Below, piece after piece: positions 3,608 through 23,806 of a DNA stretch of 64,000 nt (positions are counted from its first letter, which is position 1; the number at the start of each line of letters is the position of its first letter). Under the pieces are notes generated by a model that searched no databases, was not told the origin of the DNA, and saw nothing but the letters and a program-made list of their open reading frames with translations. The stretch is taken from the sequence record NC_048048.2. The stretch is one strand, 5' to 3'. Both the position numbers and the translations under genes were made by a program.

Positions 3608-3702
3608 CGCATACAAGAAAACTGTTGCCAAGCCCCAAAGATCGCTTGACAGCATAAAAGCCCAATGCGACAAGGGGACATCCAAACGGGAGACACCCCC
3701 CA

Positions 3703-4275
3703 ATGACCACCGAAACCCTCGACCTCCTCTATCCGGTCCTGATGCTGGAGCAGAAGATTCCCCACCGCGAAGGCATGTTGCGGCTGGCCATCGTCCTGCG
3801 CGACTTCGGCCCCAAGGCGCCCCATCGCTACGTCACCCACCTGCGGGCTGAAAACCCCGTGCCGGGCTCTGACCACGCCTTCACCTACAGCTATGAGCAT
3901 GGCACCTATTCGGCCGACCTGCGCCGCGCCCTGGCCGTCTATTTCGAGCGCGTCACCGAGCGGGTCATGACCGCCATGGTCGTGCTCCACGACCTGCCCG
4001 AGGTCGCGCCGCCGGCGCCGACCGTCACCGTGCCGCTCGAACTGGCCCAGACCGCCTATGGCCTGATCGATGACAACGAACTGGACCTCTCCAAGGCCTG
4101 CGGCAACGTCACCTTGGTCGAGGCCGCCATTACCGGTCTGGCCGCCGTCCTGGGACCGCGCCGCTACTTCCGCGATGTCGAGGAAGGCAACGCCAAGCTT
4201 CTGGAGGCCTTCGAAGCCCAGCAAGCCGCGCGTGACGCGGCCCTAGAAGCCGAATCCGAAGAGGAAGAGGCCTAA
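3703..4275 (+). CDS. Hypothetical protein (cassette gene)
   Basis: Follows promoter 3646 and GGGAGACACCCC leader/RBS. Confidence 0.85.
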   Translation: MTTETLDLLYPVLMLEQKIPHREGMLRLAIVLRDFGPKAPHRYVTHLRAENPVPGSDHAFTYSYEHGTYSADLRRALAVYFERVTERVMTAMVVLHDLPEVAPPAPTVTVPLELAQTAYGLIDDNELDLSKACGNVTLVEAAITGLAAVLGPRRYFRDVEEGNAKLLEAFEAQQAARDAALEAESEEEEA

Positions 4276-4445
4276 AAAGCCCGCCCAGGCCTCCCCGGCC
4301 TGGGCGTGAGCCCTCCAGGGGCCGTTAAGGTTAACGCCAGGGGCCGGGACGTTAAGGTTAAGGCCGAAAATAGTGCGAGAAACCTGTTGACACGCATTGC
4401 GGCCCTATGCGAGAACAAGGCTCCACTTCATGAGGAGCGCCAAGC

Positions 4446-5072
4446 ATGGCCCTGCCCGATCACTTCCTGGTTTCCGTCGACGGCTCGCTCTATGACACGC
4501 GGGTGCAAGGCTGGAACCAAGCCGCGCCGCTGCGGATCAATTACCGGATCGTCAATCGCGACATCCACGGCATGAGCGAGGTCAAGGCCGCCTTGCGCTG
4601 CGGCGCCTTTACCGACATCGGCGGCTATCCGCTGTATTTCGTCACGCAGGACGGCCGCGCCCTGTCCTTCGACAGCGCCCGCAAGATGCTCTATCAGATC
4701 GCCGACGATTTCCAGCATGGCGCCTCGACCGGCTGGCGGATCACCGGCGCCCTCATCAACTACGAGGATCACGACCTCGTCTGCGATCACAGCGGCGAGA
4801 AGATTCCGGCCGCCTATGATCCGGTGCAATGGGCCGCAGGCTGCAATGTCTCGGGCTTCATGCCCGACAGCGAGCCTTCCCACCATGCGACCTGGGAAGA
4901 GGCCAAGGAAGACTTGCGCGCCCAGGTCGAACTGGCGCGCGAGCCCTACGAGATCGGTTCGGACGAGGACGACGCCCTAGCCCGCGTCGCCCGCGCCCTG
5001 GAGGCCCTTAAGGAAGGCCAAGAGCTTAACATGGGCGCCATCGGCTATCGCTGGTGGGTCGAACGCCTGTAA
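4446..5072 (+). CDS. Hypothetical protein, conserved phage family (GGYPLYFVT..DG / INYED.DL.CDH)
   Basis: Follows promoter 4387; GAGGAG RBS. Confidence 0.85.
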   Translation: MALPDHFLVSVDGSLYDTRVQGWNQAAPLRINYRIVNRDIHGMSEVKAALRCGAFTDIGGYPLYFVTQDGRALSFDSARKMLYQIADDFQHGASTGWRITGALINYEDHDLVCDHSGEKIPAAYDPVQWAAGCNVSGFMPDSEPSHHATWEEAKEDLRAQVELAREPYEIGSDEDDALARVARALEALKEGQELNMGAIGYRWWVERL

Positions 5073-5093
5073 ACCAAGGAAAGGACCCCTTCC

Positions 5094-5240
5094 ATGTTCA
5101 TTCTCATCGTCGGCAATCCCAGCGACGGCTTCACTTATTACGGCCCCTTCGACGAGCATGACGACGCCGTCACCTATGCCGAGGCGACCGGCACCGAGGG
5201 CAACCCCTGGTGGGTCGCGCCCCTGGAAGCGGCGGACTAG
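5094..5240 (+). CDS. Small hypothetical protein (48 aa)
   Basis: AAGGA RBS; MFILIVGNPSDGFTYYGPFDEHDDAV...; manually translated. Confidence 0.7.
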   Translation: MFILIVGNPSDGFTYYGPFDEHDDAVTYAEATGTEGNPWWVAPLEAAD

Positions 5241-5246
5241 CCCGTC

Positions 5247-5381
5247 ATGACCGCTCTCGAAAAGCGCGGCTACAAGGCCGCCCAGGCGGGCGTCAAGTGG
5301 TGGAACAACCCCCACCCCAGCGGCTCCCCGGCCGCCTATCAGTGGGACAAGGGCCACACCCGCCACCGCCTCGGACGCTAG
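5247..5381 (+). CDS. Rmf/CrpP-fold-like small protein (44 aa)
   Basis: MTALEKRGYKAAQAGVKWWNNPHPSGSPAAYQWDKGH; the RGYxA..G....NP.......W..G pattern resembles Rmf RGYQAG...CPY...WLGGW. Confidence 0.5.
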   Translation: MTALEKRGYKAAQAGVKWWNNPHPSGSPAAYQWDKGHTRHRLGR

Positions 5382-5384
5382 CCG

Positions 5385-5410
5385 AGCCCAGGCCTTCGCG
5401 CCTGGGCTTT
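5385..5410 (+). terminator. Intrinsic terminator
   Basis: AGCCCAGGC/GCCTGGGCT stem followed by a short T run. Confidence 0.55.
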
Positions 5411-5560
5411 GCCCGCCCCCTGGGCGTTAAGGTTAAGGCCGAAAATAGTTCAAGAAACCTGTTGACACGCATCAGGCTCCCATGCGAGAACAGGATCAGA
5501 CGAAACGACAAGACCACAAAGGAGGCCGCCATGAAGTAGCGACAATCTGGAGCACAACTC

Positions 5561-5947
5561 ATGGAATTCTTCGTCCGCACCACGCTGGTCAGCATCGCCC
5601 GCCACTGGGAGGACGGCGCCGACGTGATCGCCACCTGCTATTGCGTCTGTGTCGAGTACCCGGACGGCGCCCGCTATGTCCACGACTATCAGCCGGTCGA
5701 CCGCTATGTCAGCGCCGACGACGAAGGCGAGCCCATCTATCCCTGGCGGGACGGCGAGGCCATCAAGGCCAAGCTGGACGCCTTGCGCGATGAGATCGCC
5801 GCCCACGTCGCCGCTGGCGGGAGCCTCGATCCTGGCCACTGGTTCGAGGTCGATCCGCGCTACGGCTCCCCGGCCTATATGGGCCTGGACGCCTTCGGGT
5901 TCTTCCGGGCGCGCGAAAAGCAAGAGGCCGCCGAGCGCGGCGACTGA
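5561..5947 (+). CDS. Hypothetical protein
   Basis: GGAG RBS, downstream of promoter 5462. Confidence 0.8.
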   Translation: MEFFVRTTLVSIARHWEDGADVIATCYCVCVEYPDGARYVHDYQPVDRYVSADDEGEPIYPWRDGEAIKAKLDALRDEIAAHVAAGGSLDPGHWFEVDPRYGSPAYMGLDAFGFFRAREKQEAAERGD

Positions 5948-5952
5948 CACCC

Positions 5953-5982
5953 AAAAGGCCCGCCCATCCGGCGGGCCTTTTT
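5953..5982 (+). terminator. Intrinsic terminator (possibly bidirectional)
   Basis: AAAAGGCCCGCC-CATCC-GGCGGGCCTTTTT. Confidence 0.85.
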
Positions 5983-6129
5983 CCTTGACCACCGCCTGGG
6001 GTTAACCTTAAGGCCGCGTTAAGGTTAAGCCCGCCCAGGCCCGTAAAAAGATGCAAGAAACCTGTTGACACGCATGGAAGGCCTATGCGAGAACAGGGCT
6101 CAACACCAACGCCAGCCGGGAGACACCCC

Positions 6130-6720
6130 ATGGCCCTCGTCACCGAATCCTTTGTCGTCGATCTGGCCTGCGGGCGCGCCCTGACCAACGGCGAGCGCCG
6201 CATGGTCGCCGCCGTGATCGACTCGCTTCTCGACCCGCATTTCAAGTCGACCGCCTGGGTCAAGGGCGGCGACCATCGCGAGGCCGTCCACTACTGCGAC
6301 CGCGTGACGCCCTACAGCCTGCACGGCGAGAACGCCAACGCCGCGCGCGTGCGCACCGAGGCCCTGACCACCCGCGACCATGACGCCCCCGTCCTGCTGT
6401 CGCTGTCGGTCGGCGACACCATCGGCGAAATCGCCCGCTTCTACACCATCGCCGCCGCTGTCGAATATCTCGACGGCAACCCCGATATCGATCCGACCTC
6501 GCTGCACATGGGCGCCTACACCATTGACGCCCCGTTCGGCGTGGCCAATGACATCGAGGCTGACAAGCTCCTCTATGACCTGGGCTATCGCCTGCACGCC
6601 ATGGCCGGCGGGTCCTGGACCTACAGCGATCCGCAGGGCCGCCTGTGGGACGGCGGCGGCAAGCGCGAAGCCGTGGTCATGATCGCTCTGAAGCAAGCCG
6701 CCGACGCTGAAGAGGCCTAA
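6130..6720 (+). CDS. Hypothetical protein
   Basis: Start reassigned to the ATG after GGGAGACACCCC; the ORF-track start at 6085 is the promoter ATG. Confidence 0.85.
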   Translation: MALVTESFVVDLACGRALTNGERRMVAAVIDSLLDPHFKSTAWVKGGDHREAVHYCDRVTPYSLHGENANAARVRTEALTTRDHDAPVLLSLSVGDTIGEIARFYTIAAAVEYLDGNPDIDPTSLHMGAYTIDAPFGVANDIEADKLLYDLGYRLHAMAGGSWTYSDPQGRLWDGGGKREAVVMIALKQAADAEEA

Positions 6721-6725
6721 GGCCC

Positions 6726-7049
6726 GTGAAGCGCCGTCACGCCCTCTTCCTGTCGGTGATCGCTTCGGCGCCCGACGTGGTGATCCTGCAAGCTCCGGCG
6801 CACTTCCTGCGCTGGAGCGACCACCGCAAGGCCATCCTGGCGTTCATGCGCCAGACCTACGGCGTCAAGGCCGCCGACGTTCACGCCGTCGAAGGCGTCG
6901 CCGGCTATGCCGAACCCGACCCGACCGACGACCCCGCCGTCCTGGCGCGCTTTCAAGCCGCCTTCGCCGGGTCTGACAACTTCCCCAAGGTCGCCCTGGC
7001 GGCCTGGGACGGGCAGGCCTATCGGCTGGTCCGCCGGCCTCTGGCGTGA
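6726..7049 (+). CDS. Hypothetical protein
   Basis: GTG start directly after the upstream gene. Confidence 0.7.
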   Translation: MKRRHALFLSVIASAPDVVILQAPAHFLRWSDHRKAILAFMRQTYGVKAADVHAVEGVAGYAEPDPTDDPAVLARFQAAFAGSDNFPKVALAAWDGQAYRLVRRPLA

Positions 7050-7173
7050 GGCCGCCACCGCCCAGGCTTAACCTTAACGTGGCGTTAAGGTTAAGGCCGA
7101 AAATAGTTCAAGAAAGCTGTTGACAGCATAGGAGGCTTATGCGAGAAAGGCTCATCGAAACGGGAGACACCCC

Positions 7174-7689
7174 ATGGACGACACCTATCCGCCCCTGACC
7201 CCCGGCCAGCAAGCCGCCCTGGTCGCCTTCGCCGACCAGCATGGCGGCCTGGGCGAGGCCTGGAAAGAGGCCCTGAGCGACGCCTGGAGGACGTGCAGCG
7301 AGCCCGATGCGCTCAAGGCCGACCTGCGGACCATCCGCAACACCTATGGCCCCTCCTGGCTCTATGACGAATACGCCTGGGGCTGGCGCCCGACCCTTCC
7401 CGACTGGGAGCGCGCCGGCCGCTGGACCGACACCCCGCCGCAGCCGACGCCGGGCAAGGCTCGCTGGAGCGCCGCCTTCGACCCGCCGGCCATCGGCGAC
7501 CGGGTGCGCGTGACCACCAACGGCCTGGGCTGGGCGCGGGTCACCGGCTACTTCGTCGAAGCCGACTGGCTGGGCGTGATTGTCAAGCTGGAGGCCCCGG
7601 CCGACTGGTATGTCAAACAGAACGGCGGCAACGTCCCCGGCCACAGCTTCGGGACCGAGATCGCCCTGACCGACCCCGCGACCGACTGA
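7174..7689 (+). CDS. Hypothetical protein
   Basis: Promoter 7120 plus GGGAGACACCCC leader. Confidence 0.85.
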   Translation: MDDTYPPLTPGQQAALVAFADQHGGLGEAWKEALSDAWRTCSEPDALKADLRTIRNTYGPSWLYDEYAWGWRPTLPDWERAGRWTDTPPQPTPGKARWSAAFDPPAIGDRVRVTTNGLGWARVTGYFVEADWLGVIVKLEAPADWYVKQNGGNVPGHSFGTEIALTDPATD

Positions 7690-7869
7690 CCTGGACGGCC
7701 CTGGCTGGGAGACCAGCCGGGGCGAGGCCTAACCCGGCGCGGTTAACCTTAACCGCCCATTAAGGTTAACCGCCGGCGCCCTGGGGCGGGCGAAAGAAAA
7801 TGCAAGAAAACTGTTGACACGCATCTGAGGGCTATGCGAGAAAGGGCCATCGAACAACGGAGGCCCCTC

Positions 7870-8712
7870 ATGGCCAAGCTATTCAGCGACCTTCAGGACC
7901 TTGCCAACTCGACCTATGTCGTGCGCATCGTCGACAATGGCGGCCAGAGCGCCGACCGCTACACGATCGTCACCGCCGATGGCGACTATTACGCCTACAG
8001 CGCCAATCCCGCCCATCCCCAAGGCGTGGGCCTGAGCGGCGAGGGCATCGACCCGCAAGTGCTGGTCGACTGGGTGGAGCGCGGCGAAGCCGTCGACCTG
8101 ACCATCGGCGAGCTACCCGAGGCCGCCGCCCGCTGTCTGCTGGCGTCGATCAACGCCAGCGTCGAGGACTTCCTGTCGGCTGTCGAGGACCCGACCAGCA
8201 ACGCCGTGGCCCCGACCCGCGAAAAGGCGGAGATCAATGACGGCGTGATGGATTGCTTCGGCAAGGGCATCTATCGCGTGGGCGAGGGTTTCGCCGTGCG
8301 CATGGATGGCCTGGACGCGGGCGATGATCGCGGCCCCTTCATGAGCGCTGTCGAGGCGGTCAAGGCCACCCTCCCCGATGAATACGCCTGGGCTGGCGAG
8401 GAATACCTGTCGCCGCGCGACATGACCAAGATCACGCCCGAAGCCAAGCCGCTCGTTCTGGTCCACGCCCTGGAGGCCATTCGCGACTATGAATATCAGC
8501 GCGACAACCCCGGCTCGTTCTTCGACGGGCTGAACGAGGACGACACTGACGCGGGCCTGGGCATCGTGCGCCGCACGCGCTACCTGTCCAAGGTCACCGA
8601 TGATGCGACCATCGTCGGGCTGATCGGCGAGGCGCCGGCCTTCGCCCTGGCCCATGAATGTCTCGACCAACTGTGGACCCTGGCGCAAGAGCGGTGGGAG
8701 GCGGGCCAGTGA
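7870..8712 (+). CDS. Hypothetical protein (acidic)
   Basis: Promoter 7814, GGAGG RBS; start reassigned to MAKLF. Confidence 0.85.
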   Translation: MAKLFSDLQDLANSTYVVRIVDNGGQSADRYTIVTADGDYYAYSANPAHPQGVGLSGEGIDPQVLVDWVERGEAVDLTIGELPEAAARCLLASINASVEDFLSAVEDPTSNAVAPTREKAEINDGVMDCFGKGIYRVGEGFAVRMDGLDAGDDRGPFMSAVEAVKATLPDEYAWAGEEYLSPRDMTKITPEAKPLVLVHALEAIRDYEYQRDNPGSFFDGLNEDDTDAGLGIVRRTRYLSKVTDDATIVGLIGEAPAFALAHECLDQLWTLAQERWEAGQ

Positions 8713-8912
8713 GCGCCCGCGAACGCCGCGCCCTCTCCGAACTGCTGGCCCTGTTCCACGCGGTCAACAGCGGCCACGTCAAGGGCCGCAACCCCTACGC
8801 CTTCCCGGCCGTCAAGCTCGCCAACGAGGTATTGACGGGCGACCCGCTGGACGGGGTTTCCACGTCGCCGAAGCCCTGGACCGGCATCGCGAGGCGGACG
8901 GCAAGGCCTTGA
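8709..8912 (+). CDS. Small hypothetical protein
   Basis: GTGA overlap with the upstream stop. Confidence 0.6.
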   Translation: MSARERRALSELLALFHAVNSGHVKGRNPYAFPAVKLANEVLTGDPLDGVSTSPKPWTGIARRTARP

Positions 8913-9067
8913 TTTTCGAGGTCGGCGGTTGCCCGGACGGCTGCTTGCTGTCCTACAGCGGCGCGGTTCCGCGCTGCGTCAACTGCGACACCGAATATCC
9001 CGAAGAAAACGGTTGACAGCATAAGGGAGCTATGCGAGAAAGGGTCATCAACGGAGACACCCCGCCC

Positions 9068-9208
9068 ATGTGGACCGAAAAGACCTTCAAGACCCGCGCC
9101 GCCAAGGAGGCCTGGATCGCCCGCAATGAAGACCGCTATCAGATCGTCGAGATCGTGGTCTGCAACGCCTACGGCGTGACCTACAAGCCCCTCCGACGCG
9201 TCTACTAG
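9068..9208 (+). CDS. Small hypothetical protein (46 aa)
   Basis: Promoter 9013, GGAGACACCC leader; MWTEKTFKTRAAKEAWIARN... Confidence 0.75.
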   Translation: MWTEKTFKTRAAKEAWIARNEDRYQIVEIVVCNAYGVTYKPLRRVY

Positions 9209-9218
9209 GAGACCTCGC

Positions 9219-9410
9219 ATGATCCCCGACTCGGTCCGTAACCCGCAAGATCATTGGACCCCCATCGCCACCCGCGCCAAGGCTGACGCCCTGGCCTATC
9301 GCTACAACCAAGATGACGCCGGCCCCGGCCTCTACGAGGTCCACGAAAAGGGCGAAAGCTTCGCCATCGCCTACTATGACGAAGACGGCGCCTTCTGCGG
9401 CTACGTCTAA
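9219..9410 (+). CDS. Small hypothetical protein
   Basis: AGGAG RBS; followed by a terminator. Confidence 0.75.
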   Translation: MIPDSVRNPQDHWTPIATRAKADALAYRYNQDDAGPGLYEVHEKGESFAIAYYDEDGAFCGYV

Positions 9411-9428
9411 CCCGCTCCTGTCAACTTG

Positions 9429-9466
9429 AAGGCCGGCGCCGCTCTCCTGGCGCCGGCCTTTTTCTT
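9429..9466 (+). terminator. Intrinsic terminator
   Basis: AAGGCCGGCGCC/GGCGCCGGCCTT stem plus TTTTTCTT. Confidence 0.85.
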
Positions 9467-9619
9467 GCCCGCCGCCTGGGTCTTAACCTTAAGGCGAGAT
9501 TAAGGTTAACGCCGCCTTAAGGTTAACCGGTGCCCCGCATCCCGCCCGGATGCAAAAAACCTGTTGACACGCATTTCGACCCTATGCGAGAAAGGCGACG
9601 AACACGGGAGACACCCCTT

Positions 9620-10618
9620 ATGACCACGACCATTCCCGGCGCCGAGCATACGATGATCGGACAAGCCGCCTATCGCTCGACCAAGCGCCCCGACCAAGTG
9701 CGCGAGATGGCCTATGGCGCGTTCCCGGCCGCGACGTCGGACTCGCCCTTCGCCGTCAAGCCGGCCTGTGGCAAGGTCCCGAGCGCGCGCGTGCTGGAGG
9801 ACTTCGACCCCGCCGACGTCTTCACGACCAGAGCCAATGATCGCGGCGGCTTCTATGCCTCCGCCAACTTCGGCGGCTCTGAGGTGTCGTGGATCAGCAT
9901 CGCCGGCTATGGCGACACCGAGGAGGCCGCCCGCGCCGATCTCATGGCCCGGTTCATCGCCGACCGCGACGGCAAGGGCAAATTTGGCCCTCACCATCCC
10001 CTGGTCGGCTATGACTGGGGCTATAAGCTCGCCCCGTTCTGGGACATGCTGGAGCGCGAGGCCGCCATTCGCCAGCCCTTCAAGCGCCAGCTTTACCTGG
10101 GCAAGCTGAAGTCCGGCCGCCCTAATCCCAAGGGCTTTGACGTGTTCGTCGATGTCGAATGGACCGGCGTGCGCCTGTCGCTGTCGGGCGTCATCGGCCC
10201 CAAGGCCAATGGCAACGCCTGGGACGGCGCAGGCCAGATCGTCGGCAGTCTCAAGCGCAAGGACTTTCTGGAGTTCGCCCCGTCCTGGCATTATGGATCG
10301 GCCCTTGACGGTCTGGTCCAGGCCTGGACCCGCTGGCACCTGAACGACCTGCGCGCCGGCACGCTTCGGCAGGAAGACCACCTGCGCGGCTATGAGGCCA
10401 AGCGCAACATTGAGCAGGCCAAGGCCGCCGGCGCCCATTCTCTCGACGCCACCCGCGCCGAACTGGCGCGCGTCCATATGGAGCCCGACACCTGGGAGCG
10501 CCACAACGGCCGGCCCTATAGCTACGGCTCCGCATGGCTTCGCGAGGAGGTCCCCACCTACGTTCTCGACTTCCTGCGCAATCTCCCCGCCCCCACCAAA
10601 ATCAGCCCCTGGAGGTAA
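9620..10618 (+). CDS. Hypothetical protein (332 aa; WHLNDLRAG / YGSAWLREE motifs)
   Basis: Promoter 9564 plus GGGAGACACCCC leader; start reassigned. Confidence 0.85.
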   Translation: MTTTIPGAEHTMIGQAAYRSTKRPDQVREMAYGAFPAATSDSPFAVKPACGKVPSARVLEDFDPADVFTTRANDRGGFYASANFGGSEVSWISIAGYGDTEEAARADLMARFIADRDGKGKFGPHHPLVGYDWGYKLAPFWDMLEREAAIRQPFKRQLYLGKLKSGRPNPKGFDVFVDVEWTGVRLSLSGVIGPKANGNAWDGAGQIVGSLKRKDFLEFAPSWHYGSALDGLVQAWTRWHLNDLRAGTLRQEDHLRGYEAKRNIEQAKAAGAHSLDATRAELARVHMEPDTWERHNGRPYSYGSAWLREEVPTYVLDFLRNLPAPTKISPWR

Positions 10619-10625
10619 CCCGCCC

Positions 10626-11060
10626 ATGGCCATCAACACCGCCGGCCTCGTCGGCAAGCTCAAGGAAGCCCTCGCCGCCGCCCCCAACCTGACCCTATGG
10701 GCCAAGGAACGCGGCCTCTTCCATCAGAACGTTTCGGCCGCCGCGCGCGGCGACACCGTGCCGCAAGAAAGCATCGCCAAGGCCCTGGGCTTCCGACGCG
10801 TCCACGTCCAGGCCTATCTGGCGCCGGGCGAAGCCCTGCCGCTCCTGCCGCCCGGCTGGGAGGAGGTGCTTCCCGGTTCGGCGACCCCGGTCGACTGGAA
10901 GCCCCGCGACAAGGCCGCCGCCCCCGCCCCGCGCCGGGTCGGTTCGCCCGACCAGATGGCCAAGGCCCGCGACGCGCGCCGGCCGCGTTCCGCGCCGGTC
11001 CAGCCCCCGGCCCAAACCGCCGGCAAGCCTCGCCGCAAGAAAGTGCAAGAAACCGGTTGA
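10626..11060 (+). CDS. Putative HTH DNA-binding protein
   Basis: GGAGG RBS; NLTLWAKERGLFHQNVSAAARGDTVPQESIAKALG resembles an XRE/Cro-type helix-turn-helix; basic Pro-rich tail. Confidence 0.6.
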   Translation: MAINTAGLVGKLKEALAAAPNLTLWAKERGLFHQNVSAAARGDTVPQESIAKALGFRRVHVQAYLAPGEALPLLPPGWEEVLPGSATPVDWKPRDKAAAPAPRRVGSPDQMAKARDARRPRSAPVQPPAQTAGKPRRKKVQETG

Positions 11061-11110
11061 CAGCATAAGGCGGCTATGCGAGAAAGGCTCATCACTTCTG
11101 GAGCAAGCCC

Positions 11111-11320: not shown

Positions 11321-11336
11321 CAGAGGAGGCGCCGCT

Positions 11337-11549: not shown

Positions 11550-11555
11550 GGCAAG

Positions 11556-12457: not shown

Positions 12458-12459
12458 CC

Positions 12460-13086: not shown

Positions 13087-13088
13087 TC

Positions 13089-14617: not shown

Positions 14618-14620
14618 GCC

Positions 14621-16257: not shown

Positions 16258-16365
16258 AAGCTGGCCTCGCGCCAGCAAAAAGGCCCGTCCCCTGGCGGGG
16301 CGGGCCTTGTCCGGTCCGATCGGGATTAACCTTAACGAGAGATTAAGGTTAACGCGCCCTTAAGG

Positions 16366-16611
16366 TTAACTGGTGGCGTTCTTGCGCGTCGTGGCCTGGG
16401 GATTGGCCTTGAGCCATGCGTCGGCTTCCGTGCGGGTCGAGAACGGCGCCCCGCCAATGCCCTGCGTGCCGTCATCCCATTGAATGGTCCAACCCACGTC
16501 CTTGATTTCCCAATCCTCCGCCACGCCATGGGGAATCGGCGTATGAAGCGCGATGCGGGTAAAGGGCGCGCGCTTGAGTTGACGGATGCGCGCCGGAATG
16601 ACTTGCGGCAT
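16366..16611 (-). CDS. Hypothetical protein; the only substantial minus-strand gene inside the cassette array
   Basis: Own promoter on the minus strand (TTGACA 16690-16685, then GCTACATT); protein-like composition. Confidence 0.6.
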   Translation of the reverse strand: MPQVIPARIRQLKRAPFTRIALHTPIPHGVAEDWEIKDVGWTIQWDDGTQGIGGAPFSTRTEADAWLKANPQATTRKNATS

Positions 16612-16697: not shown

Positions 16698-16789
16698 GAC
16701 ATGGGCTAGAATCCTGTTGACACGCATTGCGGTCCTATGCGAGAAAGATCGGGCAAAGGCGCATCCCGCGCCGCTGGGAGACACCCCGC

Positions 16790-17560
16790 ATGGACCTGAC
16801 CACCTTTACGGCCAAGGCTGATTTCGTGCTCTGCAATGAGCCGGTGACCATCACCGTCAAGCCCGCCGGCCGCCCGCTCTACCTGTCGTTTTCCATCGAC
16901 CAGATCGGCATGATCGGCGGCGCCGAGGAGCTTTACGCCAAGGCCGAACAACACGGCGTCGAGGACCTGATAACGGTTCTCAACATTTCCAACGTCCTGT
17001 CGCTGAAGTCCATCGAGACCTATGACGACGAAGACCGCGAGGCCGTCGAAAGCCTGCGCTACGCCCTGCTCATGCTCGACGGCGAGCGCTACGCTTCGGA
17101 TGTCCAGTTCGAGGACGTGGACGAGGCCGAGTTTTCCAACCGCGACGACACCATTGACAGCCGGCAAATCGTCGAGCGGGTCGAGGTGCTTCGGAGCGCC
17201 CTGGAAACCGCCGGCTTCGACACCGCCGACCTGTCCGCCCTGGAAGACCTCGACGCCGACGAAGCCGTCAAGGACGCCGACCAGCGCGACGCCTTCAACG
17301 CCATCCGCGAGGAATTCCTGATCCTGGCGCGCATGGTCGAGGAGGGCGGCAACTACGGCGAGGATTGGCGGTTCGGCGCGACTCTGGTCCGCGAATCCTA
17401 CTTCACCGAGTTCGCGCAAGAAGAGTGCGAAAGCCTGGGCTTCATCTCCAAGGACTTCCCGTCCTGGATCGCCATCGACTGGGAAAAGACCGCCGAAACG
17501 ATGCTACACGACTACACCGAAATCGACTTCGACGGCGTGAGCTACTACGTCCGCGCCTAG
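16790..17560 (+). CDS. ArdA-like acidic anti-restriction (DNA mimic) protein
   Basis: Very D/E-rich; C-terminal FPSWIAIDWEKTAETMLHDYTEIDFDGVSYYVR resembles the ArdA C-terminus from memory. Confidence 0.6.
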   Translation: MDLTTFTAKADFVLCNEPVTITVKPAGRPLYLSFSIDQIGMIGGAEELYAKAEQHGVEDLITVLNISNVLSLKSIETYDDEDREAVESLRYALLMLDGERYASDVQFEDVDEAEFSNRDDTIDSRQIVERVEVLRSALETAGFDTADLSALEDLDADEAVKDADQRDAFNAIREEFLILARMVEEGGNYGEDWRFGATLVRESYFTEFAQEECESLGFISKDFPSWIAIDWEKTAETMLHDYTEIDFDGVSYYVRA

Positions 17561-17623
17561 GTGAAGCTCCTCGAAGGCGGCGGCCTGCTCGCGCTCTGCT
17601 TCCTCCTCTGGTTGCTTCACTAA
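17561..17623 (+). CDS. 20-aa hydrophobic micropeptide, copy 2 (MKLLEGGGLLALCFLLWLLH)
   Basis: GTG immediately after the ArdA-like TAG; synonymous divergence from 13822. Confidence 0.75.
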   Translation: MKLLEGGGLLALCFLLWLLH

Positions 17624-17626
17624 ACC

Positions 17627-17662
17627 CGGCCGGCGTCCATGACCTGGGCGCCGGCCTTTTCT
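17627..17662 (+). terminator. Intrinsic terminator
   Basis: GGCCGGCG../..CGCCGGCC stem followed by TTTTCTT. Confidence 0.65.
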
Positions 17663-17720
17663 TACCGCGCCGATCGGGGTTAACCTTAACGCCGTCTTAA
17701 GGTTAACGGCGGGCCTGGAG

Positions 17721-17849
17721 GCGAGGGCGTCAAGGCCGCGAGCTAGGATTACACGCGATGGCTTAGCCGGCGTCCAGCCGGCGGCGCCTTCGACCACCGC
17801 GAGGCGGCCTTGACCCTCGCAATCTCGCCGATCCGCGACCAAGTGTCAA
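17721..17849 (-). ncRNA. Candidate antisense small RNA with its own promoter
   Basis: Minus-strand TTGACA (17849-17844)-N15-GCGAGATT (17828-17821); 11+6 bp closing stem 17721-17739/17804-17820; no credible ORF. Confidence 0.45.
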
Positions 17850-17934
17850 CCGTTTTCTTTTTCCAAGAAACCTGTTGACACGCATCGAACGCCTATGCGA
17901 GAAAGACTCAACGTCAACGCCTGGAACCCTATCC

Positions 17935-18591
17935 ATGCCCCGCACCGTCACCAAACAGGTCTACACCTTCAAGGAACTGAATCCCAAGGCCAAGCAAAAG
18001 GCCATCGAGTGGTATCGTGGCCTGAACGATCAAGACTCCGGTTGGTGGGATTTCGTCTATGACGAAGCCGACCGCATCGCCGAAGCCTTCGGGATCACCC
18101 TGCGCCGCAAGGAAGCCGGCAAGCCCAATAGCGGCCCGGACATCATGTTCACCGGCTTCTGGAGTCAAGGCGACGGCGCCTGTTTCCAAGGCCGCTACGA
18201 GTCGCCCCAAACCCCGGCCGTCGAAGCCTTCGCCGCCCTGGGGATCGAAGACGCCACGCTCAAGGCTCTGGCCGCCCGCCTCGACGCCCTGAGCGCCAAG
18301 GTGCGCTTGATCAGCACGGTCAAGCACTCCGGTCACTACTATCACGAGTATTGCACCGACTTCGAAACCGAGCGCATGGTTCCCGACGACGCCGGCGACG
18401 ACTTCGATATCTACGATTTCGACCACGAGGACGAAAAGGAACTGATCGACATTCTTCGCAGCTTCATGAAGTGGATTTATCGCCAGCTTGAGGCCGTGGA
18501 CGAAGATCGCAATTCCGATGAGACGATCAGCGAAACCCTGACCGACTCCGATTACGAATTCGAGGCGGACGGCTCGCCGACCAACGACTAG
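17935..18591 (+). CDS. Conserved MGE protein (family often auto-annotated 'antitoxin of toxin-antitoxin stability system')
   Basis: Motifs VYTFKELNPKAKQKAIEWYR and FTGFWSQGDGACF recalled from alphaproteobacterial ICE/plasmid proteins; function unproven. Confidence 0.6.
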   Translation: MPRTVTKQVYTFKELNPKAKQKAIEWYRGLNDQDSGWWDFVYDEADRIAEAFGITLRRKEAGKPNSGPDIMFTGFWSQGDGACFQGRYESPQTPAVEAFAALGIEDATLKALAARLDALSAKVRLISTVKHSGHYYHEYCTDFETERMVPDDAGDDFDIYDFDHEDEKELIDILRSFMKWIYRQLEAVDEDRNSDETISETLTDSDYEFEADGSPTND

Positions 18592-18765
18592 GCCAAGCCC
18601 GCCGCGCCCGGCCTCAACGCCGGGCGCGTGTCGGGTTTTGGTTTTTCAAGGTCCTGTTAAGGTTAACGAAAAAAGCCCTCGGACGGCCTGAGAAAAACGC
18701 AAGAAAACTGTTGACACGCATCCAAGCCCTATGCGAGAAAGGCTCATCGCAACGGGAGACACCCC

Positions 18766-19053
18766 ATGACGACCCAAGCCAAGAAGCGCCGCAAGCGCTA
18801 CCCGCCCAAGAGCGACGCGGCCAAGGCCCGCGCCGCCGCCAAGAGCAAGGCGTTCTTCGCCCGTCACGCGCTCAAGGCCACCGAGGCCACGATTGCCGCC
18901 ATGAAGGCCGGCGATCAAAAGGCCGTCCAACGCCACGCCAAGGACGCCCGGCGCCTGACCCGCTGGATGAACCACAAGCGCGACATCGCCGCCGCCTTCG
19001 CGGCCGTCTTCAACATTCGGGCCGCCGCCCAAGCCCTGAGAGCCGCCGCATGA
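18766..19053 (+). CDS. Basic Lys/Arg/Ala-rich small protein
   Basis: Promoter 18711 plus GGGAGACACCCC leader. Confidence 0.8.
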   Translation: MTTQAKKRRKRYPPKSDAAKARAAAKSKAFFARHALKATEATIAAMKAGDQKAVQRHAKDARRLTRWMNHKRDIAAAFAAVFNIRAAAQALRAAA

Positions 19054-19265
19054 CCCGTCGCCCTGCCTTTCTGACCGTCCTGGGCGGGATTGGCCTCATC
19101 CTGGCCAGCTTCGTCCTTTCGGCCGCCAGCGCCCCGGAAAAGCGGGTTCTCGTGGGTCAATACTGCGACGGCGACCCCGTGCGCCTCTACGGCCTGGAAG
19201 ACGGCGAGGAAGCCGCGCAAGCGTGCGCCATCGTCGAAGTCCACGCCCTGCCCAAGGGCTTCTGA
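19050..19265 (+). CDS. Small secreted/membrane protein
   Basis: ATGA overlap; N-terminal hydrophobic segment. Confidence 0.65.
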   Translation: MTRRPAFLTVLGGIGLILASFVLSAASAPEKRVLVGQYCDGDPVRLYGLEDGEEAAQACAIVEVHALPKGF

Positions 19266-19267
19266 CC

Positions 19268-19525
19268 ATGGCCGCCCCGAACGACAGCCGCGAGGAGCCG
19301 GTCAAGGTCGAAGACCTCAAGGGCGGCATGATGTGCGATCTTGAGGGCGACATGTACGCCGACAACGCCGGGCGCTTCCCGGAATTCGAGTTCGCCTATG
19401 CCGTCGTCGTCGAAGTCGACACGGCCCCGCGCTACGAGGCGCCGGGGACGGTCCTGGTCGAGTTCGACAAGATCACCGTGGCCTTTCCCAAGGGCCACAC
19501 CCTGCCGACCATCAAGGAACCCTAG
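19268..19525 (+). CDS. Hypothetical protein
   Basis: TGACCATG junction. Confidence 0.7.
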   Translation: MAAPNDSREEPVKVEDLKGGMMCDLEGDMYADNAGRFPEFEFAYAVVVEVDTAPRYEAPGTVLVEFDKITVAFPKGHTLPTIKEP

Positions 19526-19527
19526 AC

Positions 19528-20061
19528 ATGGAACGCCTCAACGTCCACGTGCTGACCGTCACCTATGACAGCGGCAACCCCGTCCCGCCGTTCGTCGCCC
19601 TGGGCATGTCCAAGGAGGAACTTGACGACACCCTGGAGGCCCTGGCGCGCGAGGAAGTCGATAACCGCTATTTCGAGGAAGAAGACCTCTTAGACGACCT
19701 CGCCAAGTTCCTGACCGCCGAACGCGTCGCCGAGCTTGAGCCCCTGGGCCTGGACGCCATCGGCCTACTGACTCCGGTCGAAATCGTCGACATGGCCAAG
19801 CGCTTCGCCTCGATCACGCCAAGCTTTGACGTGCTCCCGCTCTACCGCGACCCGCCGCCCGTCCGCGCCTTCGATCTCGACGACCGCGAAGCCGCCGCCG
19901 TCCTGACCGGCCTGCGCATGATCCAAGCCCAAGGCGTCCCGGACGATCTCGACGACCTCGCCACCAATGGCGGCGCCTTCGAGCCCCTGGACGGCGACGC
20001 CATCGACGGGCTCTGTGTGCGGATCAATTTCGACGTGACCGGCGAGGCGCCGGCCTCCTGA
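19528..20061 (+). CDS. Hypothetical acidic protein
   Basis: Operon-packed. Confidence 0.8.
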   Translation: MERLNVHVLTVTYDSGNPVPPFVALGMSKEELDDTLEALAREEVDNRYFEEEDLLDDLAKFLTAERVAELEPLGLDAIGLLTPVEIVDMAKRFASITPSFDVLPLYRDPPPVRAFDLDDREAAAVLTGLRMIQAQGVPDDLDDLATNGGAFEPLDGDAIDGLCVRINFDVTGEAPAS

Positions 20062-20141
20062 CGCAAGAAAGCTGTTGACAGCATAATCCGCCTATGCGAG
20101 AAAAGGCTGTCAACGGCGATCCCCGCCGCATGGAGACACCC

Positions 20142-20486
20142 ATGAAGTTCATCAAGACCGACATCCTCGACCACGGCCGCGCCTCGACCCTGCGCAACGC
20201 CCTGGGCACGGCCCTGGAGCGCTACACCGAAATCGGCAAGGAATTCGAGGGCTACCTGAACGACTATCAGGCCCTGGACGAGGCGGGCAAGGAAGCCTGG
20301 AAGGCCCGCAACCACTGGATCAACCCGCGCGCCCTGCCCGACCTCAAGACCCAGTTCGAGCGCCAAGCCGCCGACGTGCAAGACCTCATCAACTGGCTTG
20401 ACGGCGACAAGTTCATGAACGAAGACGGCGATTTCCCCAAAGGGACCGAGTTCACCATTGTCGCCGGCCTGATCCGCGACTTCTAA
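20142..20486 (+). CDS. Hypothetical protein
   Basis: Promoter 20075, GGAGACACCC leader; start reassigned. Confidence 0.8.
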   Translation: MKFIKTDILDHGRASTLRNALGTALERYTEIGKEFEGYLNDYQALDEAGKEAWKARNHWINPRALPDLKTQFERQAADVQDLINWLDGDKFMNEDGDFPKGTEFTIVAGLIRDF

Positions 20487-20497
20487 ACGCCCTGGTC

Positions 20498-20524
20498 AAG
20501 GCCCGCCCTCACGGCGGGCCTTTT
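20498..20524 (+). terminator. Intrinsic terminator
   Basis: AAGGCCCGCC-CTCAC-GGCGGGCCTT plus T run. Confidence 0.85.
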
Positions 20525-20680
20525 CCTTGACCTCGCGCCGTTGTTAACCTTAACGTGCAATCGTTCGCCTGTTAACCTTAACGGGACATGCCTGATCCGT
20601 TAACCATAGCCTGCAAAAAAGCTGTTGACTCGCATCCAAGCCCTATGCGAGAAAGGGTCATCAGCAACGGGAACGATCCC

Positions 20681-21079
20681 ATGACCCAAGAATACACCGC
20701 CGAAGAACGCCAAGCCAAGTTGACCGAAATGGCCGATCACTGGCGCGAGCAACTGAAGGACGCCCAAGCCCGCCTGGACATGACCGTCCTCGTCGGTCAA
20801 GGATTCGTCTGCGCTCTGGAGCGCGATCTTTCCATGGCTATCCGCGCTGACGGTCCCGACCGCTATCGCCTGTGGCCAGTATCGGCGCGCATGGTTCCCA
20901 TCCTCCACTTCACCAAACTTGACGCCATGCGGGTCGCCGCGCACTGGAATGGCAACCTCCCCGACGATAAGCAGGACCTGCGAGTCGTCGCCACCCATTA
21001 CCGCGACGTGCTTCAAGCCTATGTCGAGACCGCAACGGCGCAAATCGCCTGGATCGAAGGCGGCTGCAAGGCCGCCTGA
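20681..21079 (+). CDS. Hypothetical protein
   Basis: Promoter 20625; start reassigned to MTQEY. Confidence 0.75.
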   Translation: MTQEYTAEERQAKLTEMADHWREQLKDAQARLDMTVLVGQGFVCALERDLSMAIRADGPDRYRLWPVSARMVPILHFTKLDAMRVAAHWNGNLPDDKQDLRVVATHYRDVLQAYVETATAQIAWIEGGCKAA

Positions 21080-21269
21080 CCTTGACGCCCTCCGGCTCCG
21101 GCCGGAGGGTTAATTTCTGCCCAGCCCGCGTTAAGGTTAACCCGCCGCCGGCCTGGGATTAACCTTAACCCGCAACCGTTTGCGGGTTAACCATTCGATG
21201 CAAGAAAGGTGTTGACACGCATTTAGGCCCTATGCGAGAAACGCCTATCAGCAACCGGGAAACACCCCC

Positions 21270-21833
21270 ATGCCGCAATTCGTTCTCGACACTTCGGGCA
21301 AGGCCCGTGTTGGCGCCACCAAGAATTTTCCGAACGGCGTCACCATCAACTGGAATGATCTCGACGCCTTCACCCAAGGCTATATCGAGGCGCTGTTTTT
21401 CACCGAAAATTCCCCGGCCTTCACGTCGGACGAATGGCACGGCGAGGAATGTCAAGCCGCGCTTGAGGCCGGCACGTCTGACGGCTCGCTCCCCGGTGAC
21501 GCCGGTTTCGCCGACCTTCATGAAACCGCCCTGGCCACCATCGTCGAGGAGTGCGCCGCCTTCCAACGCGAAAACGCCGACCTGTTGGCGCAAGCCTATG
21601 GCCACAACTTCCCGGCGCGGGTGATCGGCGACGGCACCTTGCCCGATTCCCACCGCCCGGCGTGGGACTATGACGAGGCGGCGGCGGGGCGGGATTTCTG
21701 GTACACTCGCAACGGCCATGGCGTCGGCTTTTGGGATCGCGGCCTAGGCGAGGTCGGCGACAAGCTTTCCGACGCCTGCCGTTACTCTGAGGTTTACGTG
21801 TCGTTCGAGGCTGACGGCAAGGTTCATCTCTAA
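21270..21833 (+). CDS. Conserved phage hypothetical (AGRDFWYTRNGHGVGFWDRG motif)
   Basis: Promoter 21212 plus GGGAAACACCCC leader. Confidence 0.85.
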   Translation: MPQFVLDTSGKARVGATKNFPNGVTINWNDLDAFTQGYIEALFFTENSPAFTSDEWHGEECQAALEAGTSDGSLPGDAGFADLHETALATIVEECAAFQRENADLLAQAYGHNFPARVIGDGTLPDSHRPAWDYDEAAAGRDFWYTRNGHGVGFWDRGLGEVGDKLSDACRYSEVYVSFEADGKVHL

Positions 21834-21839
21834 CCCGGC

Positions 21840-21867
21840 AAAGGCCCGCTTGACAGCGGGCCTTTTT
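21840..21867 (+). terminator. Intrinsic terminator
   Basis: AAAGGCCCGCT-TGAC-AGCGGGCCTTT plus TT. Confidence 0.85.
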
Positions 21868-21995
21868 CGTGCCTGCCCCACCTGGGTTAACCTTAACGCC
21901 AGCCCGCTTCGCCTTAACGCTCTTTTTGCAAGAAAACAGTTGACTCGCATCCAAGCCCCATGCGAGAAAAGGTCATCAACCACGGAGCGCCGCAC

Positions 21996-22370
21996 ATGGC
22001 CAAAACCGAAACCGTCGACCTCGCCCTGGTCATGCTCGATGAGCAAAAGGCCGCCCTGGGCGCCTCCCGGACCTTCACCTTTCACGAAGTCCGCGCGGCG
22101 TTCATCGACGCCAAGGCCCTGACCACGCTTGAGGCCACCTTGCACAAGATCGCTGAACACGAGTGCAACGGCTATCGCAGCGACATCACCGAACGTTTCG
22201 ACATCCGCCGCCGCGACAAGGCGCAAGCCGCCGCCACGGCCATTGCCGAGCGCTACGGCCTGACGCTCGATTTCAACGGCGACCCGCGCGGTTCGGCCCT
22301 GAAGATCAAGACCCCGCACACCGGCCGTTACAACGGCTTTGGCGGGCGTGAGGATGGATGGTGCGTCTAG
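21996..22370 (+). CDS. Conserved phage hypothetical (FNGDPRG..LKI motif)
   Basis: Promoter 21940, GGAG RBS; start reassigned. Confidence 0.8.
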   Translation: MAKTETVDLALVMLDEQKAALGASRTFTFHEVRAAFIDAKALTTLEATLHKIAEHECNGYRSDITERFDIRRRDKAQAAATAIAERYGLTLDFNGDPRGSALKIKTPHTGRYNGFGGREDGWCV

Positions 22371-22439
22371 CGCCATCCTGACCCCCTTCCACCCCCTGTA
22401 GCGCGTCCCTCTCAAACCCCTGGCCCTAGGAGACACCCC

Positions 22440-22610
22440 ATGGCCCGCACCACCACCCACACCCGCACCGACAAGGCCAAGCGCGAGACGCTGGCGCCGT
22501 GGGAATATGACCGCCAGCACAAGGCGGACAAGAAAGCCGCCAAGGCGTGGCGCACCGATCGCCAAGGCCGCCGCGCCCTGGCCTCTTCGGACGCCTTCAA
22601 GGCCCACTAG
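22440..22610 (+). CDS. Small basic protein (56 aa)
   Basis: AGGAGACACCCC leader; manually translated MARTTTHTRTDKAKRE... Confidence 0.75.
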   Translation: MARTTTHTRTDKAKRETLAPWEYDRQHKADKKAAKAWRTDRQGRRALASSDAFKAH

Positions 22611-22703
22611 GCGGGCTCGAAAAAAGTTCGGCTCGATGCGAGAAAGCTGTTGACTCGCATCGAGCCCCTATGCGATAAAGGGTCATCAAACGGAGACACC
22701 GAC

Positions 22704-22868
22704 ATGACCCACCTGCAACGCGCCACCACCGACCAAGTCACCGTCGAGCACTACGCCGTTTCGGGCGGTCAACTGACCGTCACCCGCGCCCCCGCCCGCG
22801 CCCCGATCTATCGCCTGAACGGCTTCAAGATCACCTACTTCGAGGCCAAGCGTAAGCTCGCCGCCTAA
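22704..22868 (+). CDS. Small hypothetical protein (54 aa)
   Basis: Promoter 22650, GGAGACACC leader. Confidence 0.75.
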   Translation: MTHLQRATTDQVTVEHYAVSGGQLTVTRAPARAPIYRLNGFKITYFEAKRKLAA

Positions 22869-22882
22869 GACCCCTCCCCGAT

Positions 22883-22912
22883 AAGGCCCCCTCCCTGGAG
22901 CGGGGCCTTTTT
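22883..22912 (+). terminator. Intrinsic terminator
   Basis: AAGGCCCC..GGGGCCTT stem plus TTT. Confidence 0.75.
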
Positions 22913-23102
22913 CGTGGCCGTTAGCCAAGCGTTAAGGTTAACCCGTAGGGTTGATTTCGTTAACCTTAATGGGGCGTTAAGGTTAACGGGCCGGCCCAGG
23001 CTGTTAACCCTGCGGGCGAAGAAAGTGCGATCCTGTGCAAGAAAGCTGTTGACTGCATAAGCGTCCTATGCGACAAAGGGTCATCAACAACGGAGCTACC
23101 CG

Positions 23103-23273
23103 ATGTCCTTCCGCCTGACCCTCACTGACGAAGCCCGCTTCACCGCCGCGCGCGGCGCGGTCCGCACCGTCCGCGAACAGGCCCGCCCTGAGCCGGCCAA
23201 GGACGGCTCGGGCAAGTACGTCCTGGCCTCGCAAGACGCTCTGTCGCGCATCCGCGCCGTGCTGGGCAACTAA
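23103..23273 (+). CDS. Small hypothetical protein (56 aa)
   Basis: Promoter 23049, GGAG RBS; MSFRLTLTDEARF... Confidence 0.7.
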   Translation: MSFRLTLTDEARFTAARGAVRTVREQARPEPAKDGSGKYVLASQDALSRIRAVLGN

Positions 23274-23276
23274 GCC

Positions 23277-23462
23277 ATGAAGGTCACGGCGCACTATGGC
23301 AACGGGCTCTCGCGGGTGATCCCCTGCGAGACGCCGCAAGCCGCTCTGGACGCGATCAAAGCCGCGCTGCGCTATGATCGTTCGGCGACCTTCACGGTTG
23401 ACAAGCGCCTCACCCAAGGCGCGCCGACCCGCGCGGCCTCCGAACGGGTTTGGCTGCTGTAG
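23277..23462 (+). CDS. Small hypothetical protein
   Basis: Operon-packed. Confidence 0.65.
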   Translation: MKVTAHYGNGLSRVIPCETPQAALDAIKAALRYDRSATFTVDKRLTQGAPTRAASERVWLL

Positions 23463-23548
23463 AAGAAAAAAGCGAGTCGACGCAAAAAAGCTGTTGACTC
23501 GCATAAGGCCCGTATGCGATAAAAGGTCATCAGCAACGGAGACACCCG

Positions 23549-23746
23549 ATGACCTTCCACCACACCATGATGAGCAAGCTGGACGCGGCCCAACAGTCGG
23601 GCGAACTGTCCTATGCCCAGCACGCCGACATGCGCGCCACCCTGCGCGAGGCGAACATGCGCGGTCAGGTCTTCACCTCGATGATCGAACTGCGCCAAGC
23701 CTGCAAGGGCGCGGGCCGCGACTATCAGGGCCGCTTCGCCAGCTAA
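23549..23746 (+). CDS. Small hypothetical protein
   Basis: Promoter 23494, GGAGACACCC leader. Confidence 0.8.
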   Translation: MTFHHTMMSKLDAAQQSGELSYAQHADMRATLREANMRGQVFTSMIELRQACKGAGRDYQGRFAS

Positions 23747-23779
23747 GGCGGCCCAAACCCTCCCAAAGCCCCGACCCCT

Positions 23780-23806
23780 AGGCCCGCCCTTCGAGGCGGG
23801 CCTTTT
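23780..23806 (+). terminator. Intrinsic terminator closing the cassette array
   Basis: AGGCCCGCC-CTTCGA-GGCGGGCCT plus TTT. Confidence 0.85.

Follow-up and report, generated by a model that had tools for sequence, protein, structure and literature searches.

Twenty-three copies of a putative host-type promoter in the terminal repeat of Caulobacter phage CcrSC: a probable early-gene array with occasional recombination at its repeats

The 64,000-nucleotide stretch of DNA analysed here (record NC_048048.2, positions 1-64000; hereafter the window) belongs to Caulobacter phage CcrSC (MH588547.2, genus Bertelyvirus, linear genome of 317,489 bp), to which it was 100% identical wherever compared. Its first 23,946 bp (1-23946, plus strand) are annotated as the left copy of a direct terminal repeat, and all 23,946 bases of the right-hand copy in the CcrSC record are identical to it, the physical ends being taken as annotated. 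The left copy carries the 3' end of the large terminase gene (75-764), which enters the repeat from the right genome end, three small genes, a non-coding region with the look of a control region, and an array of units (3646-23806), each headed by a copy of one short sequence module; the repeat as a whole holds 45 genes in 24 kb. Since the array lies entirely inside the terminal repeat, the deposited genome contains two copies of it.

A search with the core pattern of the module gave 17 matches against 0.45 expected by chance, a number that none of 100 shuffled sequences reached. A looser scan recovered exactly 23 true copies of TTGAC(A/T)(C)GCAT-N9-ATGCGA between 3646 and 23519, all on the plus strand, together with one extra match at 18148 that is attributable to chance. 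The TTGAC of successive copies begins at 3646, 4387, 5462, 6065, 7120, 7814, 9013, 9564, 11057, 11672, 13893, 14370, 15608, 16717, 17875, 18711, 20075, 20625, 21212, 21940, 22650, 23049, and 23494, with a mean spacing of 902 bp (range 399-2221), and the array closes at 23806, where the terminator of its final gene ends. The strict pattern does not recur on either strand, neither between 24 and 64 kb of the window nor in the remaining ~230 kb of the 293.5 kb unit genome. An initial annotation, made from the letters alone, had described 23 co-oriented copies at 3646-23806, about 0.9 kb apart and missing from the other 40 kb of the window; number, coordinates, orientation, and spacing are borne out, and the absence can be extended to the whole unit genome.

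By column counts the module is about 50-60 nt long. TTGAC, GCAT, and CC.ATGCGA.AA are invariant or nearly so, flanked by an A-rich tract on the 5' side and by GG(C/G)TCATC on the 3' side, and identity among the 23 copies is ~67% over 60 nt, with longer common tracts in some pairs. The flanking words that the initial annotation had assigned to the repeat are present, though less regular than it stated: AAGG(G/C)TCATC is exact in 9 copies and occurs with no more than two mismatches in 18, AAGAAA.CTG is exact in 11 and within one mismatch in 20, and GGAGACACC is found downstream of 11 copies. No description of the TTGAC-GCAT-N9-ATGCGA repeat was found in the literature searched, which excluded the original description of CcrSC.

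The published consensus of the Caulobacter housekeeping sigma factor (RpoD, sigma-73) consists of a -35 element, TTGaCgS, and a -10 element, GCtANAWC, located 10-19 bp apart (PMC8144410; PMC13004042), and it was against this consensus that the modules were called as promoters. The -35 element is TTGACAC, TTGACAG, or TTGACTC in 23 of 23 copies, and GCGAGAAA, taken as the -10 element, matches five of the six upper-case consensus positions at a gap of 15 or 14 bp. In a hexamer view, the same bases read as TTGACA, a spacer of 17 or 18 bp, TG directly 5' of the second hexamer, and GAGAAA. The order of the module would therefore be A-rich tract, -35 TTGAC(A/T), 17/18 bp spacer, TG, -10 GAGAAA, and a predicted start region GG(C/G)TCATC, followed by a leader of ~25 nt with a GGAG ribosome-binding site. 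In 21 of the 23 units the annotated start codon lies 54-73 nt past TTGAC, 3' of the GGAG site; the two exceptions are gp009, which is preceded by a long leader, and gp041, whose start is annotated inside the promoter. Because of the match to consensus, the distance to the start codon, and the co-orientation of all copies with their genes, we infer that the 23 modules are strong promoters for the host housekeeping RNA polymerase holoenzyme. An Rfam search of 1-25 kb returned no family.

All 23 units are read from the plus strand, and they are described here with reference to CcrBL9 and RB23, two other Bertelyviruses. Unit 1 (3646-4386) has a short form of the promoter, reduced to a 25 nt core, and carries gp005. 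Unit 2 (4387-5461) carries gp006, gp007, and gp008, with TTAAGGTTAA boxes upstream of its promoter. In unit 3 (5462-6064) a 99 nt leader containing a two-codon mini open reading frame (ORF) separates the promoter from gp009 and a terminator (5954-5980); the mini-ORF (~5531-5539: start, one codon, stop) has a strong ribosome-binding site of its own and is kept in CcrBL9. Unit 4 (6065-7119) carries gp010 and gp011, the latter replaced in CcrBL9, and unit 5 (7120-7813) carries gp012, with a TTAA-N7-TTAA box at 7074, 46 bp upstream. Unit 6 (7814-9012) comprises gp013 and gp014; unit 7 (9013-9563), with gp015 and gp016, is the first unit of the array in the RB23 clade. Unit 8 (9564-11056, gp017 and gp018) has an extra GCAT-N9-ATGC dyad at 9537, just upstream of its promoter, and the promoter of unit 9 (11057-11671) overlaps the end of gp018 and precedes gp019, gp020, and a terminator (11554-11579).

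In unit 10 (11672-13892) the promoter is followed by gp021-gp024 and an unannotated 20-codon ORF (13822-13884). Unit 11 (13893-14369) consists of a promoter, gp025, and a terminator (14227-14251), and unit 12 (14370-15607) of a promoter, gp026-gp029, and a hairpin (15538-15563). Unit 13 (15608-16365), the cargo of which differs in CcrBL9 from the start site on, carries gp030 and a two-way terminator (16280-16308). The latter also belongs to gp031c (16366-16611, minus strand), the sole opposite-strand gene of the array, which is kept in all three clades with 94% identity to its CcrBL9 counterpart and 69% to that of RB23, and which has a promoter-like site of a different type on the minus strand at 16690-16663. 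As a candidate regulator gp031c gave no family match, and its single-sequence structure model (pLDDT, a predicted-confidence score, of 46) was unusable. Unit 14 (16717-17874) carries gp032, a second 20-codon ORF (17561-17623), and a terminator (17627-17657). The two short ORFs, each at the 3' end of its unit, are paralogous and encode a hydrophobic peptide; the first is also present in CcrBL9.

Unit 15 (17875-18710) carries gp033, with homologues in the terminal repeats of other genera, and unit 16 (18711-20074) carries gp034-gp037. The promoter of unit 17 (20075-20624) begins 13 bp past gp037 and is followed by gp038 and a terminator (20498-20522); that of unit 18 (20625-21211) is of the TTGACTC form and is followed by gp039 and a terminator (21086-21111). 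Unit 19 (21212-21939) carries an allele of gp040 exchanged with respect to CcrBL9, the switch falling at the edge of the promoter. Unit 20 (21940-22649) carries gp041 and gp042; the annotated start of gp041 (21960) lies within the promoter, and an in-frame ATG at ~21996, 3' of GGAG, is the likely start. The start annotated for RB23 gp035 (RB23 sequence position 18703) likewise lies inside or upstream of a promoter repeat. Unit 21 (22650-23048) carries gp043 and a terminator (22883-22909), unit 22 (23049-23493) gp044 and gp045, and unit 23 (23494-23806) gp046 and the final terminator (23781-23806).

Between units the order is the last stop codon, often a GC-rich hairpin with a T tail, at least one TTAACCTTAA-N7-TTAAGGTTAA, and then the next promoter. 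Our own hairpin scan placed T-tailed, terminator-like hairpins at 11 of the 23 unit ends, and inspection by eye gave 10 clear and 4 weak ones; the number of terminators returned by a scanner built on E. coli was not above that in shuffled sequences. The picture drawn in the initial annotation, of one promoter-leader design with 1-4 unrelated genes per unit, holds (gp036 and gp037 are the only within-phage paralogues among the annotated cargo), as does the presence of terminators, which are found at about half of the units and not "usually".

TTAA-N7-TTAA is the consensus of CtrA, a host cell-cycle regulator, as quoted in PMC9437464, and predicted CtrA sites are concentrated in the terminal repeats of phiCbK-like phages, CcrSC among those surveyed (PMC9437464). 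Twelve such boxes lie in the CcrSC repeat and none in the other 40 kb of the window. Within the window, the TTAA tetramer occurs 92 times in the repeat versus 10 times outside it, and the TTAAGGTTAA decamer 38 times versus once, so that the TTAA boxes noted initially are real and confined to the repeat. Eight of the 12 full boxes sit 46-93 bp 5' of a TTGAC and the others further off. A box overlapping the -35 element, as present in phiCbK, CcrRogue, and CcrPW, is absent from the CcrSC window. This distribution suggests that CtrA may provide an input to the array.

The non-coding region 5' of the first promoter (2232-3645; 1.4 kb, with no strand assigned) contains repeats, boxes, and A-tracts: about eight direct repeats with a period of ~27 bp and containing TTGACG (2860-3070), at least 12 TTAAGGTTAAC boxes (3075-3300), and A-tracts in 10 bp phasing (3300-3400). 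It looks like a control or replication-related region, and a similar block of repeats occupies the corresponding position in phiCbK. At the other end, an A/T-only palindrome is present in two copies (24048-24070 and 24135-24158) some 100-200 bp to the right of the repeat boundary at 23946, in a genome that is otherwise GC-rich. In CcrBL9 (22337) and C2 (24850) the last promoter unit falls just beyond the point where the terminal repeat is annotated to end; the boundary may vary, or else the annotations are approximate.

The same array is present in all six other Bertelyvirus repeats compared (CcrBL9, RB23, BL47, C2, J4, and C3), in 23-35 copies. The bases flanking ATGCGA are T and G in CcrSC and CcrBL9, and C on either side in most copies of the RB23 clade. 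A degenerate 24th copy in CcrBL9 (~4374), with GCTT for GCAT and a shorter gap, is orthologous to the one at 5462 in CcrSC. The possibility that whole modules evolve in concert was considered and rejected: identity is 0.68 within a genome, 0.66 between clades, and 0.71 between orthologues, with only two positions shifted together, and with within-genome identity so close to that between clades, wholesale homogenisation is not seen. Outside the genus, the same place is taken in phiCbK, CcrRogue, and CcrPW by a repeated promoter of another kind (7, 8, and 15 copies, respectively), whose -35 element is overlain by a TTAA-N7-TTAA box. Eleven of the 45 CcrSC repeat proteins have homologues in the repeats of these three phages, and gp040 is closer to CcrRogue gp009 (57% identity) than to its positional counterpart in CcrBL9 (39%). 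As the sister genera combine the same layout and partly the same genes with a different promoter, the layout appears to be a trait of the subfamily, the cargo to be partly common, and the promoter type to be genus-specific. Scans of IMG/VR, metagenome, and bacterial genome collections found arrays in CcrSC and CcrBL9 only, the other matches being single and looking like chance.

None of 30 repeat proteins reaches the curated Pfam threshold, none of the four largest has a relative of solved structure, and among 20 proteins compared with PHROGs the families matched are of unknown function, save for one weak "DNA ligase" label covering part of gp006. From position alone, a role of the cargo in host takeover or counter-defence is plausible, and the ~42 genes behind the promoters are an obvious place to seek proteins with an effect on the host during the initial minutes of infection.

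The comparison of relatives also provides recombination junctions. The BL47 repeat is ~99% identical to those of RB23 and J4, yet 5.4 kb longer, owing to three tandem duplications in the deposited assembly. One, of 1,429 bp, comprises two units and has a chimeric promoter at its junction, which matches one parent as far as the first spacer bases and the other from that point on; the crossover must therefore lie inside the promoter, and the junction can be read base by base. In another, an 884 bp two-unit segment is present five times at the inner edge of the repeat (BL47 25739-30174), the four inner copies being the same hybrid of two paralogous units, with the switch in an identical tract of 38 bp spanning start region, ribosome-binding site, and initial codons. 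The third (454 bp, two genes) has a junction homology of 1-2 bp, involves no promoter, and is illegitimate. Thus, two of the three recent BL47 duplications had their crossover within the promoter-leader module.

Two cargo swaps between CcrSC and CcrBL9 show identity of at least 90% across terminator, boxes, and promoter, and a loss of all similarity at approximately the start site, i.e. the downstream edge of the promoter. Elsewhere the two phages are collinear, and many of the gains and losses are internal to operons. Between CcrSC and RB23, the gp015-gp016 unit has been relocated to the start of the array, two adjacent units have exchanged places, and others have been moved, inserted, or duplicated; the homologous blocks start at position 0 or -1 of TTGAC. 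To put this in proportion, each junction between neighbouring genes was classed as promoter-bearing or promoter-less and scored as broken if the adjacency was lost in the other phage. Against RB23, 9 of 22 promoter-bearing and 11 of 19 promoter-less junctions were broken (Fisher p 0.35), and against CcrBL9 the corresponding figures were 4 of 22 and 5 of 19 (p 0.71).

Judged from these alignments, the repeats are real crossover sites, not the main ones. The initial annotation had taken the regulatory repeat to be at once switch and crossover site, and had expected breakpoints to fall in the repeats when relatives were aligned. That is what the two BL47 duplications, the CcrBL9 swaps, and the RB23 moves display, and the expectation is not borne out as a general rule, as there is no enrichment of broken adjacencies at promoter-bearing junctions and CcrSC and CcrBL9 are collinear elsewhere. 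The crossover points vary between events, so that general homologous recombination fits the data and a dedicated system does not.

The anatomy of the array, its distribution, its conservation in relatives, and the recombination junctions are direct observations. Taken together, they most probably describe the early-transcription region of a large lytic phage, located in a long direct terminal repeat and served by host-type promoters, with recombination as a by-product. Upon DNA entry, host polymerase would fire all units in parallel, and the invariant spacer dyad most likely provides an additional binding site for some dimeric regulator, by which the whole set could be switched together. With 23 copies of ~67% identity and longer common tracts in some pairs, the module would occasionally serve as a substrate of ordinary homologous recombination, so that units may be duplicated, moved, or given new cargo and remain ready for expression. 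Such shuffling would be a by-product, as with the promoter-early stem-loop (PeSL) elements of T4-like phages, and not the work of a dedicated cassette machinery.

The part of this explanation that concerns the spacer starts from the dyad GCAT-N9-ATGC. It folds at a mean of -4.9 kcal/mol, compared with -2.6 for shuffled sequences, and has no T tail; with so weak a fold and no tail it is not a terminator. The GCAT arm, at a position outside the host consensus, is invariant in 23 of 23 copies in CcrSC, 22 of 23 in CcrBL9, and 22 of 24 in RB23; the arms extend to 6-7 bp in the TTGACTC form; and all 25 GCAT-N9-ATGC sites of the window lie within the repeat. Two of these, at 2377 (2377-2395) and 9537 (9537-9553), have no -35 element and are both kept in CcrBL9. 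All this suggests an added site for a dimeric regulator, i.e. a candidate operator. The same observations would also suit the idea that the element is chiefly an operator array, bound at the GCAT-N9-ATGC of all units and of the two stand-alone sites by a dimeric regulator of phage or host that would turn the entire region off or on, and with promoter strength secondary, which is compatible with the early-region explanation and which we regard as possible, if clearly on the less likely side. It has to contend with the absence of the stand-alone dyads from the RB23 clade, the lack of symmetry in the N9, and the overlap of the right arm with promoter elements, and no binding protein has been identified, gp031c offering no family match and a low-confidence model only.

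Several points tell against the early-region explanation itself. A promoter scanner calls none of the repeats; its consensus is that of E. coli and not of Caulobacter, and a -10 element that does not end in T escapes it. The dyad shares bases of its right arm with TG and the -10 element, which may thus account for some of the symmetry, and no candidate dyad-binding protein was found. On the side of recombination, all of the BL47 tandem copies are as they stand in the deposited assembly.

A more far-reaching scenario, which we put forward tentatively and with some doubt, is that the Bertelyviruses have exchanged the promoter design of the whole gene set of the terminal repeat. Sister genera have CtrA-box promoters there; here we see ~23 full host-type promoters with a spacer dyad, and CtrA boxes further upstream. 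The dyad would then be the operator of a single phage-encoded switch, and exchange between repeats would have spread the design and co-shifted the two flanking positions between clades.

That the repeats are promoters for phage-directed transcription of middle and not immediate-early genes, whether through a sigma-like factor or a polymerase of the phage or through a modified form of the host polymerase, is improbable in our estimation. The -10 element does differ from the host consensus at two positions, that consensus does not account for the invariant GCAT that follows the -35 element or for the CC preceding ATGC, and the joint shift of the positions beside ATGCGA in most copies (T...G in CcrSC and CcrBL9, C...C in RB23) is what co-evolution with a phage factor would be expected to produce. 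However, the -35 element is a perfect host-type match with a spacing to the -10 element in the host range, the whole record, most of whose genes are hypothetical, has neither a polymerase nor a sigma factor among its annotations, and the promoters of the sister genera, at the same positions, are built on host CtrA boxes, which argues for host machinery; phage T5 also provides a precedent for first-expressed genes in a terminal repeat (as summarised in PMC3556154).

Finally, a dedicated gene-cassette system, whether integron-like or otherwise site-specific, in which a phage recombinase would capture, excise, and reorder cassettes at the repeat, can be set aside as very unlikely. In its favour, a constant element delimits each unit, entire units have been moved or inserted between clades, the symmetry of the dyad is reminiscent of the core site of a recombinase, and gp215, at 155 kb, is annotated as a putative tyrosine recombinase. 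However, the crossovers fall in the spacer (one), in the leader and first codons (one), and at the start site (two), as homology would dictate and with no fixed cleavage point, synteny breaks are not enriched at the repeats, one recent duplication has a junction with 1-2 bp of homology and without any repeat, the array neither contains nor adjoins a recombinase gene, and every unit has its own promoter, unlike integron cassettes.

Among known systems, the likeness to integrons lies in an ordered row of co-oriented, unrelated small genes with a repeated element between them. An integron reading was nevertheless rejected on finding no integrase in 1-30 kb, no attC-like site at the 3' ends of cassettes, a promoter repeat at the 5' end of the unit, and no fixed junction point, in agreement with the initial remark that neither integrase nor attC is visible at the array. 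The gp215 gene (CcrSC 155264-155992) is far outside the window.

In T5, the terminal repeat of ~10 kb holds a set of small genes believed to be the earliest that host polymerase expresses (as summarised in PMC3556154). CcrSC shares with it a long, non-permuted direct terminal repeat, according to the annotation and the identity of the two copies, and small genes that are all read inward. It differs in the size of the repeat (24 kb and 45 genes versus ~10 kb) and in the far greater uniformity of its promoter copies. The T5 type of repeat also encodes the A1/A2 functions, which control entry of the remaining DNA; in CcrSC a homologue of T5 protein A1, gp182, is annotated in the replication module, far from the repeat, at 126.8 kb (126852-128744).

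The CtrA-box arrays of phiCbK-like phages (PMC9437464) belong to the same subfamily and occupy the same genome position, with co-oriented small genes and boxes in intergenic repeat DNA. They differ in that the box lies over the -35 element of another promoter in phiCbK, CcrRogue, and CcrPW, whereas the CcrSC boxes are 46-93 bp 5' of a complete host-type promoter. We appear to be looking at one terminal-repeat layout across a subfamily of Caulobacter phages, with a promoter type that differs by genus; as the layout is fixed and the promoter genus-specific, the link between CtrA and phage early expression would be directly comparable between genera.

The closest parallel is offered by the PeSLs of T4-like phages. 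Each combines a strong early promoter with an A/T-rich tract and a stem-loop; the repeats lie in variable regions, before genes of unknown function, and act as exchange points (PMC2839356; PMC4122927). The analogy, proposed in the initial annotation, is apt. Both systems have many strong host-type early promoters, as far as those of CcrSC can be judged from their sequence, with an A/T-rich tract 5' and a ribosome-binding site 3', and in both these are concentrated in a variable region of genes without known function: all CcrSC copies are in the repeat, with cargo that yielded no Pfam match above threshold among 30 proteins and no relative of solved structure among four. Symmetry between the -35 and -10 elements is likewise common to both, as are chimeric repeats at the duplication junctions of close relatives and exchanged genes that keep their own expression signals. 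Rearrangements bordered by repeats are represented here by two of the three BL47 duplications and the two CcrSC/CcrBL9 swaps, with no overall enrichment, and gene turnover is not concentrated at the repeats. Further differences are the lineage, CcrSC being a long-tailed jumbo phage of Caulobacter, the confinement of the array to the terminal repeat and hence its presence twice per genome, and the added CtrA-type boxes. The spacer symmetry of CcrSC is a weak dyad of 4-7 bp in place of a stable terminating stem-loop (-4.9 kcal/mol, no T tail), termination being left to separate terminators at about half of the units (11 of 23). Repeats as occasional crossover points are thus already known for T4-like phages, and by analogy the array resembles both PeSLs and a T5-like early repeat; it adds a clean, countable case, outside the T4-like phages, of regulatory repeats that would both express accessory genes and occasionally reshuffle them.

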